A stretch of 47,277 bases of DNA from Octopus bimaculoides. Its lineage: Eukaryota. The stretch lies in contig NC_068989.1 of NCBI RefSeq assembly GCF_001194135.2, positions 75,074,924-75,122,200 on the forward strand, read 5' to 3'. Below are positions 23,901 to 26,900 of the stretch, piece by piece. A program made the position numbers and the translations under genes. Within the stretch, counting starts at the first letter, position 1. Each line of letters begins with the position of its first letter. The notes under the pieces are model-generated. The model was not told where the DNA came from and ran no database searches. It saw nothing but the letters and a program-made list of their open reading frames with translations.

Positions 23901-26900
23901 TGGGCCGTAGTGGGTGGCTACAATGATGGAGAGGGGACAATGCTGCATGTAGAAATTTTAGTAATACGACCTTGATTTTTAGACATTTTATTGCTCCCAC
24001 CTCCTAGCTTGAGAAAATTCCAACATCAACACATTTGTTGTCCCACCTTTATTGCCAACAACTTGCTACCATAAATGCATCATCACTTCACCACCGCAAC
24101 TTCTGTACAATCTACACCTCACAACCAAAACCCCATCTTTATCATCTTAGAAATTACAAAACCAACCTCCATCATCAACACCACCACCACCATGCACTAA
24201 TATAATTCCATTGCCACCACCACATACCACTCCTTTTTCAGGAGTACCACCTTTATCACTTATTACCCGTCATCCCACCTACCATCTTGCTCCTATCAAT
24301 CCAGTTGTCTTTCTGTCCATCTGTTTCTTTCTACATGCAACACTTCTGTATGTTATTAGCAACTAATCTAATCACCACTTTACCCTGCTAGCAACTAATC
24401 TCTGATGAGTCTTCAGATGAAACAAAATGTATTTTGTTGGACTCATTGTTTTCAATATAAGTTTACATGCATAATGAACATATTTAATAAACATATTTAG
24501 ATTTGCTATGTAAACAAGGCTCTTTCCGAAGAACAAACCAAGAAAAAGCTCAATTATACAAGTTTCATCTGGTTTTTTTGTTGCTAATTTGTCAAGAGTA
24601 TCTATTCCATTCCACTCTACAGAAAAATAAAGCAGATTACAGATACTTATCAAAAAAGCTATGAGTAACCTCTTTCAATGCTACCAAACTGCTCTCCTCA
24701 AGGTTGCGCAGGTGCAGGGGCACATAACGCTCTTTAGATGCTGTAGGAGCAGGAGGAGGAGGAGAACCTATAAAAACAAATTTATAAGTTTCCATTAACT
24801 GGGCATTCTTAAAAGGAATGGGGATATAAACTGTTGAAGTAAAACAGAATATCACAACTATGCTCAAATAATTAGTCAAAAATCAATTCTGAAAAATCTG
24901 AATAAATTTCAAAAATATTAAATATCTTTAATCTGTCTTTAGAAAAAAAGTGAACAGTATTGACTTTAAAAATTTATCTTTGAAAGGTATTAACTGTTAT
25001 GAAAAGAAAAGTCATTTTTAAAGCTCATTTTCAATTTATCGACAAAATTAAAACTTCCATAATGAAGAGTTTAGAGGAAAAAAAAATTATTTATTTCAAA
25101 ATAAACAGTTCAAGGAAGTGTTTATGCCAACTAGAGACAGCACGTGTGAATATGCAAATAATTGGCAAATGTTACTCAGAGCATTTTTGATTAACTTGTT
25201 GGCTTCTTTACCTCTATCTTTCTCTCAAGCAGAACAGATGAGACACTTTTGACTTGATAGATCAGTAAAATATAAAACAAGTCTAGCCAAGCCATTCTCT
25301 AGTCCATTTTGCAGAGAGAGCCCTGTGGTTTAAACCACAGGATGTTTGTACAAGATCAAATACATGTTTGTTTAACATAAAACATGTAAATTTATTTACA
25401 TGTTTCTCCACATGTAAATAATGAAGCCACACACAGACGTGTGTATATATATATAAGCATATTTTTAAGTCGAGAATGATTTTATATATACTTACAGTGT
25501 GGAAAAACAATTACACTTTTAAATATGAAAATCATCAGAAAAACAAAGTCTCTTTAAAATTATCAATTTTATAATTAAAGAAACAAAAATGCTGAAAGGA
25601 AAAAAACAAAGCTTTTAAACTTTACACATTACAAATACTTCATGAAAGCATTTTTTTTCTTCTTTTTTTAATGATCGAGACTGAAGAGTGAAATATGATG
25701 CTGCCCCCTTTATCATCTGGGATTCCACAAATGAAAATTATCTAGAGATATGAAAATCTGCCCCCAAAATTGCAATAACTAAAAAGTGATCCACCCACCT
25801 CTATTTCTCCGGTCATCACCAGGTGGAATCAAATCTCTTTCAAGGCTATCATGAACAGATAAACTTCTCTCCTCATGGTTGCGCAGGTGCGGGGGCACAT
25901 AACGCTCTTTAGATGCTGAAGGAGCAGGAGGAGGAGGAGAACCTATAAAAACAAATTTATAAGTATTCCATTAAATTGGGCATTCTTAAAAAGAATGGAA
26001 AAATAAACTGTTGAAGCCAAACAGAAAACAACAGAATATCACAGAACTAAGTCAATGCTTAACTAACACTGAAAGATTCGATCTACTCTCAACAGTGTTG
26101 AAATATCTTTAGCCTGTCTTTTTAAAAAAAAAAGTAAACATTAGCATTAACTTAAAAATGTATATCTTTGAAAGGTATCATCAACTGTTATATAAAAAAT
26201 GTCATTTTAGAACTGCTTTAAGTATCTATAGTAAAGTTTTAATTTTCATAGTGAAAATGAACTTAAGTGAAAAGAAAATTACACCTGAATGATTCCAATA
26301 ATTAGTTCAATGAAGTGTTTATGCCAGCTGTTGCTTCAGATAGCGAAAATGCTGAACAATGGTTAAATTACACAAATTTAATGCCTGTAAAATCTAATTT
26401 AACCTATGTTAGGAATTTTAATTAAGTTCTTACATCATATTCACGCAAAATATTTGAAACCATCTCAAAACACTGAAGTATAGTCATGTTGATGGACATT
26501 CATTCATAGAGACATTTCCAGGGTTTTTGATATCGGTTAGTTTAACACCTCTTAAAAGTAGCACACGGAAGAACTTTTTCTCTCTTTGTGAGAGAACTAT
26601 AATACACTTTCTAAAAACATAATGCACTGAAGTATTTCTAAACCAAACATTCAAAATATTGATATCCTTTTTCGCCTTTTTTTTTTTTCTTTTTTCTTCA
26701 CACTTTGTAGTTTACCACCAATATTCCCACTACATAAATATACAAGTTTCTGCCAGAAAATCTTTTCTGGCTTTTATCTGAATAGAAAGGGAGAATGACC
26801 AATATGATAAAGAGAGTAATTGTGAGAATATTTAGCAGCAGGTGGAAAACCAGTCCAACAGCAAGCAACAAAACTTCACTCTAGACAGTCCATTATTAAT

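Follow-up and report, generated by a model that had tools for sequence, protein, structure and literature searches.

The closest described systems to the element reported here are tandem exon duplications (reviewed in PMC8373072), intronic pseudo-exons and cryptic exons, poison exons, sequence pairs homogenised by intrachromosomal gene conversion, and the skipping of exon 3 in human DDX3X (PMC10700591). We analysed 47,277 nucleotides (nt) of the Octopus bimaculoides genome (contig NC_068989.1, positions 75,074,924 to 75,122,200), called the window below, whose minus strand carries a gene of the DDX3/PL10 DEAD-box helicases. Besides the working exon 3 of this gene (copy A), which encodes the motif YVPPHLR, a second and partial copy of the exon and of the intron in front of it lies inside intron 3 (copy B). 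In our view, copy B is probably a pseudo-exon, a partial duplicate of exon 3 confined to one lineage, and its exon-proximal block has probably been homogenised with that of the parent exon. Features of this kind are well known; the present instance is undescribed in the literature that we found, where a search returned nothing on this locus.

Compared with tandem or mutually exclusive exons, the locus likewise shows two neighbouring homologous exons within one gene and in the same direction, and copy B comes with its upstream intron and with an acceptor identical to that of its parent. It departs from such exons in being truncated and frame-shifted (about 100 of the 144 nt of exon 3 are shared, with a 10-nt deletion), in having another length and only weak donors, none of them credible, and in being unseen in the retrieved transcripts and in Argonauta, which has a single copy. 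As in intronic pseudo-exons and cryptic exons, copy B is exon-like with one good splice site, its homology to exon 3 is accompanied by lesions (a frameshift, loss of the donor and of the 3' part, replacement of an invariant proline), its substitutions look neutral with no sign of constraint on the protein, and it is found in one lineage; unlike them, it stems from a neighbouring exon of its own gene and not from a transposable element, and its block is unusually well preserved. Inclusion of copy B would, in silico, bring premature stops into the transcripts of a dosage-sensitive RNA-binding protein gene, which is the hallmark of poison exons, but in the known ones both splice sites work and conservation is usually high, whereas the donor of copy B is weak and the element is young. 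With intrachromosomal gene conversion the locus shares a near-identical tract of about 104 nt and 55% guanine plus cytosine (GC) at a distance of 1.18 kb, diverged AT-rich flanks and derived states common to both copies; the difference is that here the process is read from one genome only. Finally, exon-3 skipping in human DDX3X is an in-frame loss of an N-terminal exon 3 outside the helicase domains, and one cephalopod product (P0099) is also without exon 3, which bears the motif in the octopus, but in the human case the parent exon is skipped and there is no duplicate, and the equivalence of the two exons is assumed from their position, as the human study gives no account of what its exon 3 encodes; the comparison serves as context.

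All positions are given in window coordinates, and the features of the gene are read on the minus strand. It turned out that a segment of about 480-510 nt occurs twice at a distance of 1.18 kb; it comprises the last ~400 nt of intron 2 and the first ~100 nt of exon 3. A 25-mer of the exon on the minus strand occurs exactly twice (24717-24741 and 25892-25916), with 0 occurrences expected from shuffles. Families of direct repeats with a start-to-start spacing of 1165-1197 nt connect 26329-25832 with 25132-24667, and a finer alignment stretches the homology to ~26345 in A and 25147 in B (Table 1). The acceptor of copy B lies 1031 nt downstream of the donor of exon 3. An earlier sequence-only reading of the stretch had reported that exon 3 and its upstream intron occur twice about 1.18 kb apart, and the 25-mer and the alignment agree with it and give two direct copies only. 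Its description of a tandem duplication holds for the orientation, which is the same, but not for a head-to-tail arrangement, as a unique spacer of 684 nt separates the copies. No homology was found between this spacer and the downstream flank of copy B, and no dispersed repeats within the window were found in either. A simple 1.18-kb head-to-tail duplication followed by an internal deletion was considered and rejected as unsupported, since the spacer is unrelated to the sequence past copy B. An Rfam scan of 22000-27000 returned no family.

Within copy B, the acceptor AG is at 24769-24768 and the exon-like sequence starts at 24767. The 22 nt preceding the acceptor are identical in A and B, and four differences fall within the first 82 exonic nt, at codons TCA in A and ACA in B (S/T), CCG and CTG (P/L), CAT and CTT (H/L), and AGA and AGC (R/S). 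The last ~35-60 nt of exon 3 and its donor have no counterpart in copy B, and the frame that enters copy B stays open to a TAA at 24639-24637. On these points the earlier account was accurate: it had described about 80 exonic nt with four differences, all non-synonymous, a duplicated intron with many substitutions and indels, and a copy B that keeps the identical acceptor, has a deletion of about 10 nt and lacks the 3' part and donor of A. Its identification of the gene, the exon and the motif (DDX3, YVPPHLR, binding of eIF4E) was likewise correct.

The similarity between the copies is distributed unevenly. The acceptor-plus-exon block (-22 to +82) has 4 differences in 104 positions and no indel, against 58 of 327 aligned sites (17.7%) and 26 indel events in the duplicated intron (Fisher p = 2e-4), and every one of the 296 intron windows of this width (104 columns) shows at least 8 mismatches, or at least 22 affected columns when gaps are counted too. 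The GC content is 55% in the block and 26% in the intron, and a GC-rich block should, if anything, mutate faster than the intron. With constraint on exon A allowed for, the B lineage should have about 7-9 substitutions but has 2 (Poisson p = 0.02 to 0.005). By the Nei-Gojobori method, A and B differ at none of 20.7 synonymous and at 4 of 60.3 non-synonymous sites. If the block had the age of the intron, ~3.7 synonymous differences should have accumulated, and the probability of finding none is 0.018; under neutrality, all four differences would be non-synonymous with a probability of 0.31. Four non-synonymous and no synonymous changes thus speak for a young or homogenised block, not for purifying selection on the protein. 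The sequence-only reading had used the exon-over-intron conservation as an argument against simple neutral decay. The contrast itself is real, but it is no argument for a coding function, because all changes are non-synonymous, the donor is weak, an invariant proline is hit, Argonauta has a single copy and the known products contain only A. The locus may have some teaching value in this respect, as a case where exon-over-intron similarity can come from gene conversion instead of selection.

To polarise the four differences, the transcript of a related octopus and Argonauta were used as outgroups. At the S/T site the ancestral ACA is kept in B and the change is in A, and at the H/L site A has changed, most simply (GTT in the related octopus, CTT in B, CAT in A). 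The P/L site has changed in B through a CpG transition (CCG to CTG), and the R/S change is also on the B lineage. The outgroups therefore put half of the apparent changes of the copy in the working exon, which is a second point of teaching value. The proline lost in B is present in all 17 retrieved motif-bearing homologues from animals and fungi, as is the PP dipeptide which is found across the family and which reads PL in copy B. Copy B encodes YVPLHLR, in which Y and L stand at the canonical spacing for eIF4E binding (YxxxxL-type); the corresponding motif, 38-YIPPHLR-44, has been mapped in human DDX3X (PMC9642913). Besides, some derived states are common to A and B, for example the C in the first base of CAT/CTT, where the related octopus and Argonauta have G. 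In view of these shared states, the block coalesces after the split from the related octopus.

Copy B inherited a complete 3' splice site, while the 3' part of the exon and the donor either were never present or have been lost. The block has stayed near-identical to exon 3, or has become so again. The most likely cause of this similarity is intrachromosomal gene conversion in short tracts, with the parent exon at a distance of 1.18 kb as the partner, and protein-level selection is less likely; we infer gene conversion because the block is younger than its flanks, short, GC-rich and only 1.18 kb from its paralogue. Copy B would then be mostly ignored by the spliceosome, as exon definition should fail without a donor. 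Rare use of the acceptor would give frame-disrupted transcripts, which are expected to be removed by nonsense-mediated decay. At most, copy B would be spliced as a rare cryptic exon that disrupts the frame. Among the three options of the sequence-only reading (an alternative or additional coding exon, a poison or terminal exon, and a decaying pseudo-exon), the last one is favoured here, with gene conversion added to account for the similar block.

Several points weigh against this interpretation. Divergence is not uniform over the whole of copy B, as plain neutral decay would have it: the block is preserved better than any part of the duplicated intron and better than B's own proximal intron. 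Owing to this uneven divergence, the pseudo-exon reading needs gene conversion or RNA-level constraint to be added. The synonymous distance between O. bimaculoides and the related octopus is 0.158 and the A-B intron distance is 0.20, a mismatch which fits homogenisation because the block is younger than its flanks, but the intron and synonymous clocks may differ, and the mismatch is only suggestive. Selection at the RNA level, be it for a decoy role of the 3' splice site or for regulated cryptic splicing, would mimic gene conversion and in one genome give the same picture. The preserved block ends near the putative donor of a 78-nt exon, and the 10-nt deletion makes a G at position +5 of that GT. 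Finally, the absence of products containing B is weak evidence, as the collection appears to be without O. bimaculoides transcript assemblies and other Octopus genomes.

The splice potential of copy B bears on the rival explanations. Its 3' splice site is as good as that of A. Donors were scored with a leave-one-out profile from the 16 true donors of the gene, which have a median of 8.0 bits and, in 16 of 16, A or G at position +3. The best donor candidates of copy B within 400 nt reach 3.5-4.4 bits and are frame-shifting or past the stop. Another candidate, TAA/GTATCT (slashes in donor sequences mark the putative exon end), would give a frame-shifting exon of 121 nt with 2.1 bits. The modelled inclusion forms of 83, 98, 121 and 127 nt all acquire premature stops well upstream of later junctions, and only the 78-nt form stays open.

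The first alternative gives copy B a function as a poison or cryptic exon, which would use the intact acceptor and a weak donor (exon of 98, 121 or 127 nt) and yield DDX3 transcripts degraded by nonsense-mediated decay, tuning the dosage. We consider this unlikely, although not negligible. In favour of it, the 3' splice site matches that of A over all 22 nt, the preserved block would fit selection on splice-site and enhancer sequence, such inclusions would all give premature stops far upstream of later junctions, and GAG/GTTACT stands at the 90th percentile of intronic GTs. The candidate donors, however, have 2-3.5 bits and lie at the bottom of the range of true donors, and Argonauta is without copy B, whereas poison exons, once established, tend to be conserved over long evolutionary distances. 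The flank also argues against it: the copy B version of the conserved intronic element upstream of exon 3 has acquired two deletions and 8 substitutions of its own, where A has acquired a single substitution, so that constraint on this putative regulatory flank is relaxed and the flank is decaying. No supporting transcript was found among the retrieved annotated or assembled products. In a wider form, copy B might be a functional innovation of the Octopus lineage. It might adjust the output of DDX3 or the inclusion of exon 3, either as a regulated cryptic or poison exon or as a decoy 3' splice site, or it might be a coding exon for the variant eIF4E-binding motif YVPLHLR, and the flanking 31-nt inverted repeat would control its accessibility in the pre-mRNA; taken as a whole, we find this idea rather doubtful.

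Much harder to sustain is a 78-nt coding exon, alternative or additional, that would use the donor A/GTTTGG and either replace YVPPHLR by YVPLHLR or place both motifs in tandem. Such an exon would keep phase 1-1 with open products and retain Y and L of the eIF4E-binding consensus (motif mapped in PMC9642913), and the end of the preserved block at the donor site, with the G put at +5 by the deletion, also speaks for it. Its donor at 24690, which the sequence-only reading had proposed, nevertheless scores 0.8 bits against the median of 8.0, does no better than 29% of random intronic GTs and has a T at +3, which occurs in no true donor of the gene; by our own reasoning it would pair with U1 at only three positions, and the other, better GTs nearby are frame-shifting. 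The four non-synonymous and zero synonymous changes include P to L at a residue invariant in 17 of 17 homologues, and the exon is in no annotated or assembled product and absent from Argonauta. We therefore think this coding exon very improbable.

A terminal exon with intronic polyadenylation, which would yield a peptide encoded by exons 1 and 2 plus the variant motif, is hardly credible. The frame is open to the TAA at 24637 and one ATTAAA is found at 24488, but this ATTAAA is single, with no AATAAA within 340 nt, and by a rough estimate is no more than chance in AT-rich sequence; the 15-residue tail past the homology is unrelated sequence and has no transcript support. The truncated product would have 88 amino acids and not about 77 as claimed before, since exon 2 is longer (33798-33708). 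A resemblance between the read-through tail THSFFDK and human TKGFYDK was set aside as a chance match, out of frame with respect to A and beyond the homology. An artefact of assembly can practically be dismissed: the assembly is based on short reads and has many N gaps in the window, but both copies lie in one gap-free 12-kb stretch (18199-30367; CM046609.1), their intron parts differ at 17.7% of sites plus 26 indels, far above allelic variation, and short-read assemblers collapse repeats and do not invent diverged ones.

For the evidence from other genomes and products, we looked at the orthologous locus in Argonauta hians, a check that the sequence-only reading had suggested. It has one exon-3 unit, to which the A and B queries both map (L002, 28.57-28.84 kb), copy B is absent, and intron 3 has about 1.5 kb. 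The cluster of the octopus protein at an identity of at least 90% has 3 members (two annotations and one assembled transcript), all of which are A-type; the A-only products are P0093 (XP_052826890.1), the older annotation P0213 and the related octopus transcript P0214. The 80-amino-acid open reading frame that spans copy B has no exact record and no homologue in the protein collection. A scan of metagenome contigs with a pattern common to all octopod exon-3 versions gave 0 matches, and a protein search with the N-terminal 146 amino acids found only distant N-termini of at most 256 amino acids, with matches that seem length-limited relative to the query. Two further proteins, P0094 and P0098 (UNVERIFIED_CONTAM, Acipenser sinensis, GCA_050626445.1; L004 and L005), were considered as octopod contaminants and rejected, being sturgeon DDX3 models, whose high scores are due to duplicated helicase segments.

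Should this reading of copy B be right, the locus offers an unexceptional view of the birth and death of duplicated exons. A copy of a strong acceptor now lies within an intron of a dosage-sensitive translation factor, and if use of this acceptor were shown, copy B would be a newly born regulatory or coding exon that affects the eIF4E-binding motif of DDX3.

Table 1. Coordinates of the duplicated copies, the exons around them and associated elements in the window.
Feature	Position	Strand	Remarks
Exon 1, coding part	45115-45071	minus	15 residues
Exon 2	33798-33708	minus	ends in phase 1; 30 protein letters
Duplicated unit, copy A	26345 to ~25832	minus	last ~400 nt of intron 2 and first ~110 nt of exon 3; alignments; repeat families D1-D4, D6, D9, D12, D13
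Conserved intron upstream of exon 3	26041-25943	minus	Octopus-Argonauta match reaches 99 nt, against 3-44 nt for other exons; decayed copy in B
Exon 3 (copy A)	25942-25799	minus	144 nt, phase 1-1, 48 protein letters, donor GAG/GTGGGT; matches P0093
Unique spacer	25148-25831	minus	684 nt: 3' end of exon 3, donor, 651 nt of intron 3
Intron 3	25798-22290	minus	
Conserved intron downstream of exon 3	25798-25678	minus	match reaches 121 nt, against 4-13 nt for other exons; outside the duplication
Inverted repeat, upstream arm	25191-25161		brackets copy B with the downstream arm; pair I1, 31 nt, 81% complementary, core 20/23
Duplicated unit, copy B	25147 to ~24667	minus	inside intron 3
High-identity block of copy B	24789-24686	minus	family D1, 96% over 104 nt; 22 nt of acceptor region and 82 exon-like nt
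In-frame candidate donor GCA/GTTTGG	24689-24684	minus	78-nt exon, phase 1-1 kept; 0.8 bits, T at +3
Remainder of copy B	24685-24637	minus	10-nt deletion at 24686/24685, 17/20 matches in shifted frame, then unrelated sequence
Inverted repeat, downstream arm	24679-24649		overlaps the end of the A/B homology
Candidate donor GAG/GTTACT	24669-24664	minus	98-nt exon, frame-shifting; 3.5 bits, 90th percentile of decoy intronic GTs
Exon 4	22289-22209	minus	81-nt cassette, phase 1-1, 26 protein letters; next exon past intron 3
Exon 5	19369-19240	minus	

The host gene was placed by several lines of evidence. With a human DDX3X probe, the helicase exons were placed from ~15.4 kb down to 2.8 kb of the window. 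The window is 100% identical to the locus of P0093 (record CM046609.1 of GCA_001194135.2, ~75.07-75.12 Mb), and this protein, XP_052826890.1, is annotated as DDX3X and has the domains PF00270 and PF00271. The features of the DDX3/Ded1/PL10 family are all present, namely the DEAD and Helicase_C domains, the N-terminal YxPPHLR and a leucine-rich N-terminus. The exon junctions were fixed by XP_052826890.1 and by the related octopus transcript P0214 (L003; Logan run SRR3401912), a run which is described as an 'octopus' meta-transcriptome (PMC11662614).

Exon 3 itself looks regulated, since it is phase-symmetric with its 144 nt, has deep intronic conservation and is skipped in P0099. It is the only exon with deep Octopus-Argonauta conservation in both of its introns (window 25678-26041; L002 28567-28914). 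The assembled cephalopod transcript P0099 (L006; Logan SRR3436857) joins exon 2 to exon 5, skipping exons 3 and 4. The human DDX3X gene tolerates skipping of its exon 3, and isoforms without this exon are annotated (PMC10700591). This suggests that the motif exon is a regulated cassette in cephalopods, in parallel to the human isoforms, and such a cassette would be a by-product biologically more promising than copy B.

Copy B is bracketed by the two arms of an inverted repeat (pair I1). It is the best pair in 24300-26500, scores above 40 of 40 dinucleotide shuffles, and its RNA duplex is predicted at -24.1 kcal/mol, where shuffled arms average -8.3. No other copy of it was found within the window, and no convincing target-site duplication at its flanks. 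The inverted repeat could be the footprint of an insertion, the termini of a mobile carrier, or a stem by which copy B is looped out of the pre-mRNA; a transposon as carrier is speculative because of the lack of a convincing target-site duplication.

Other observations concern the rest of the gene. Among cephalopods, exon 4 has the behaviour of a cassette. P0093, P0095 and P0097 contain it, which covers the O. bimaculoides and Argonauta annotations, whereas P0096 and the transcript of the related octopus (P0214) do not. Inside exon 2, GTGAGT at 33745-33750 is a perfect-looking donor in the same phase as the real one and is used by no retrieved cephalopod product; the shorter exon 2 of the sequence-only reading came from taking this internal GTGAGT as the donor. 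N gaps at 16955-17067 and 986-1231 break exon 6 and the C-terminal coding region. P0093 (680 amino acids) is without a WDNLGSEDNR-type segment and the last ~45 residues (...FGGRDYRQ...DWWGN), and the public gene model is incomplete, because both are present in the related octopus transcript and the Argonauta protein. Upstream of exon 1, about 500 nt at 45252-45721 align with Argonauta L002 2253-2755 at 65% identity, and this region is probably the 5' untranslated region or the promoter. In intron 2, about 900 nt upstream of exon 3, an isolated 73-nt element (26824-26896) shares 85% identity between Octopus and Argonauta (L002 27930-27999).

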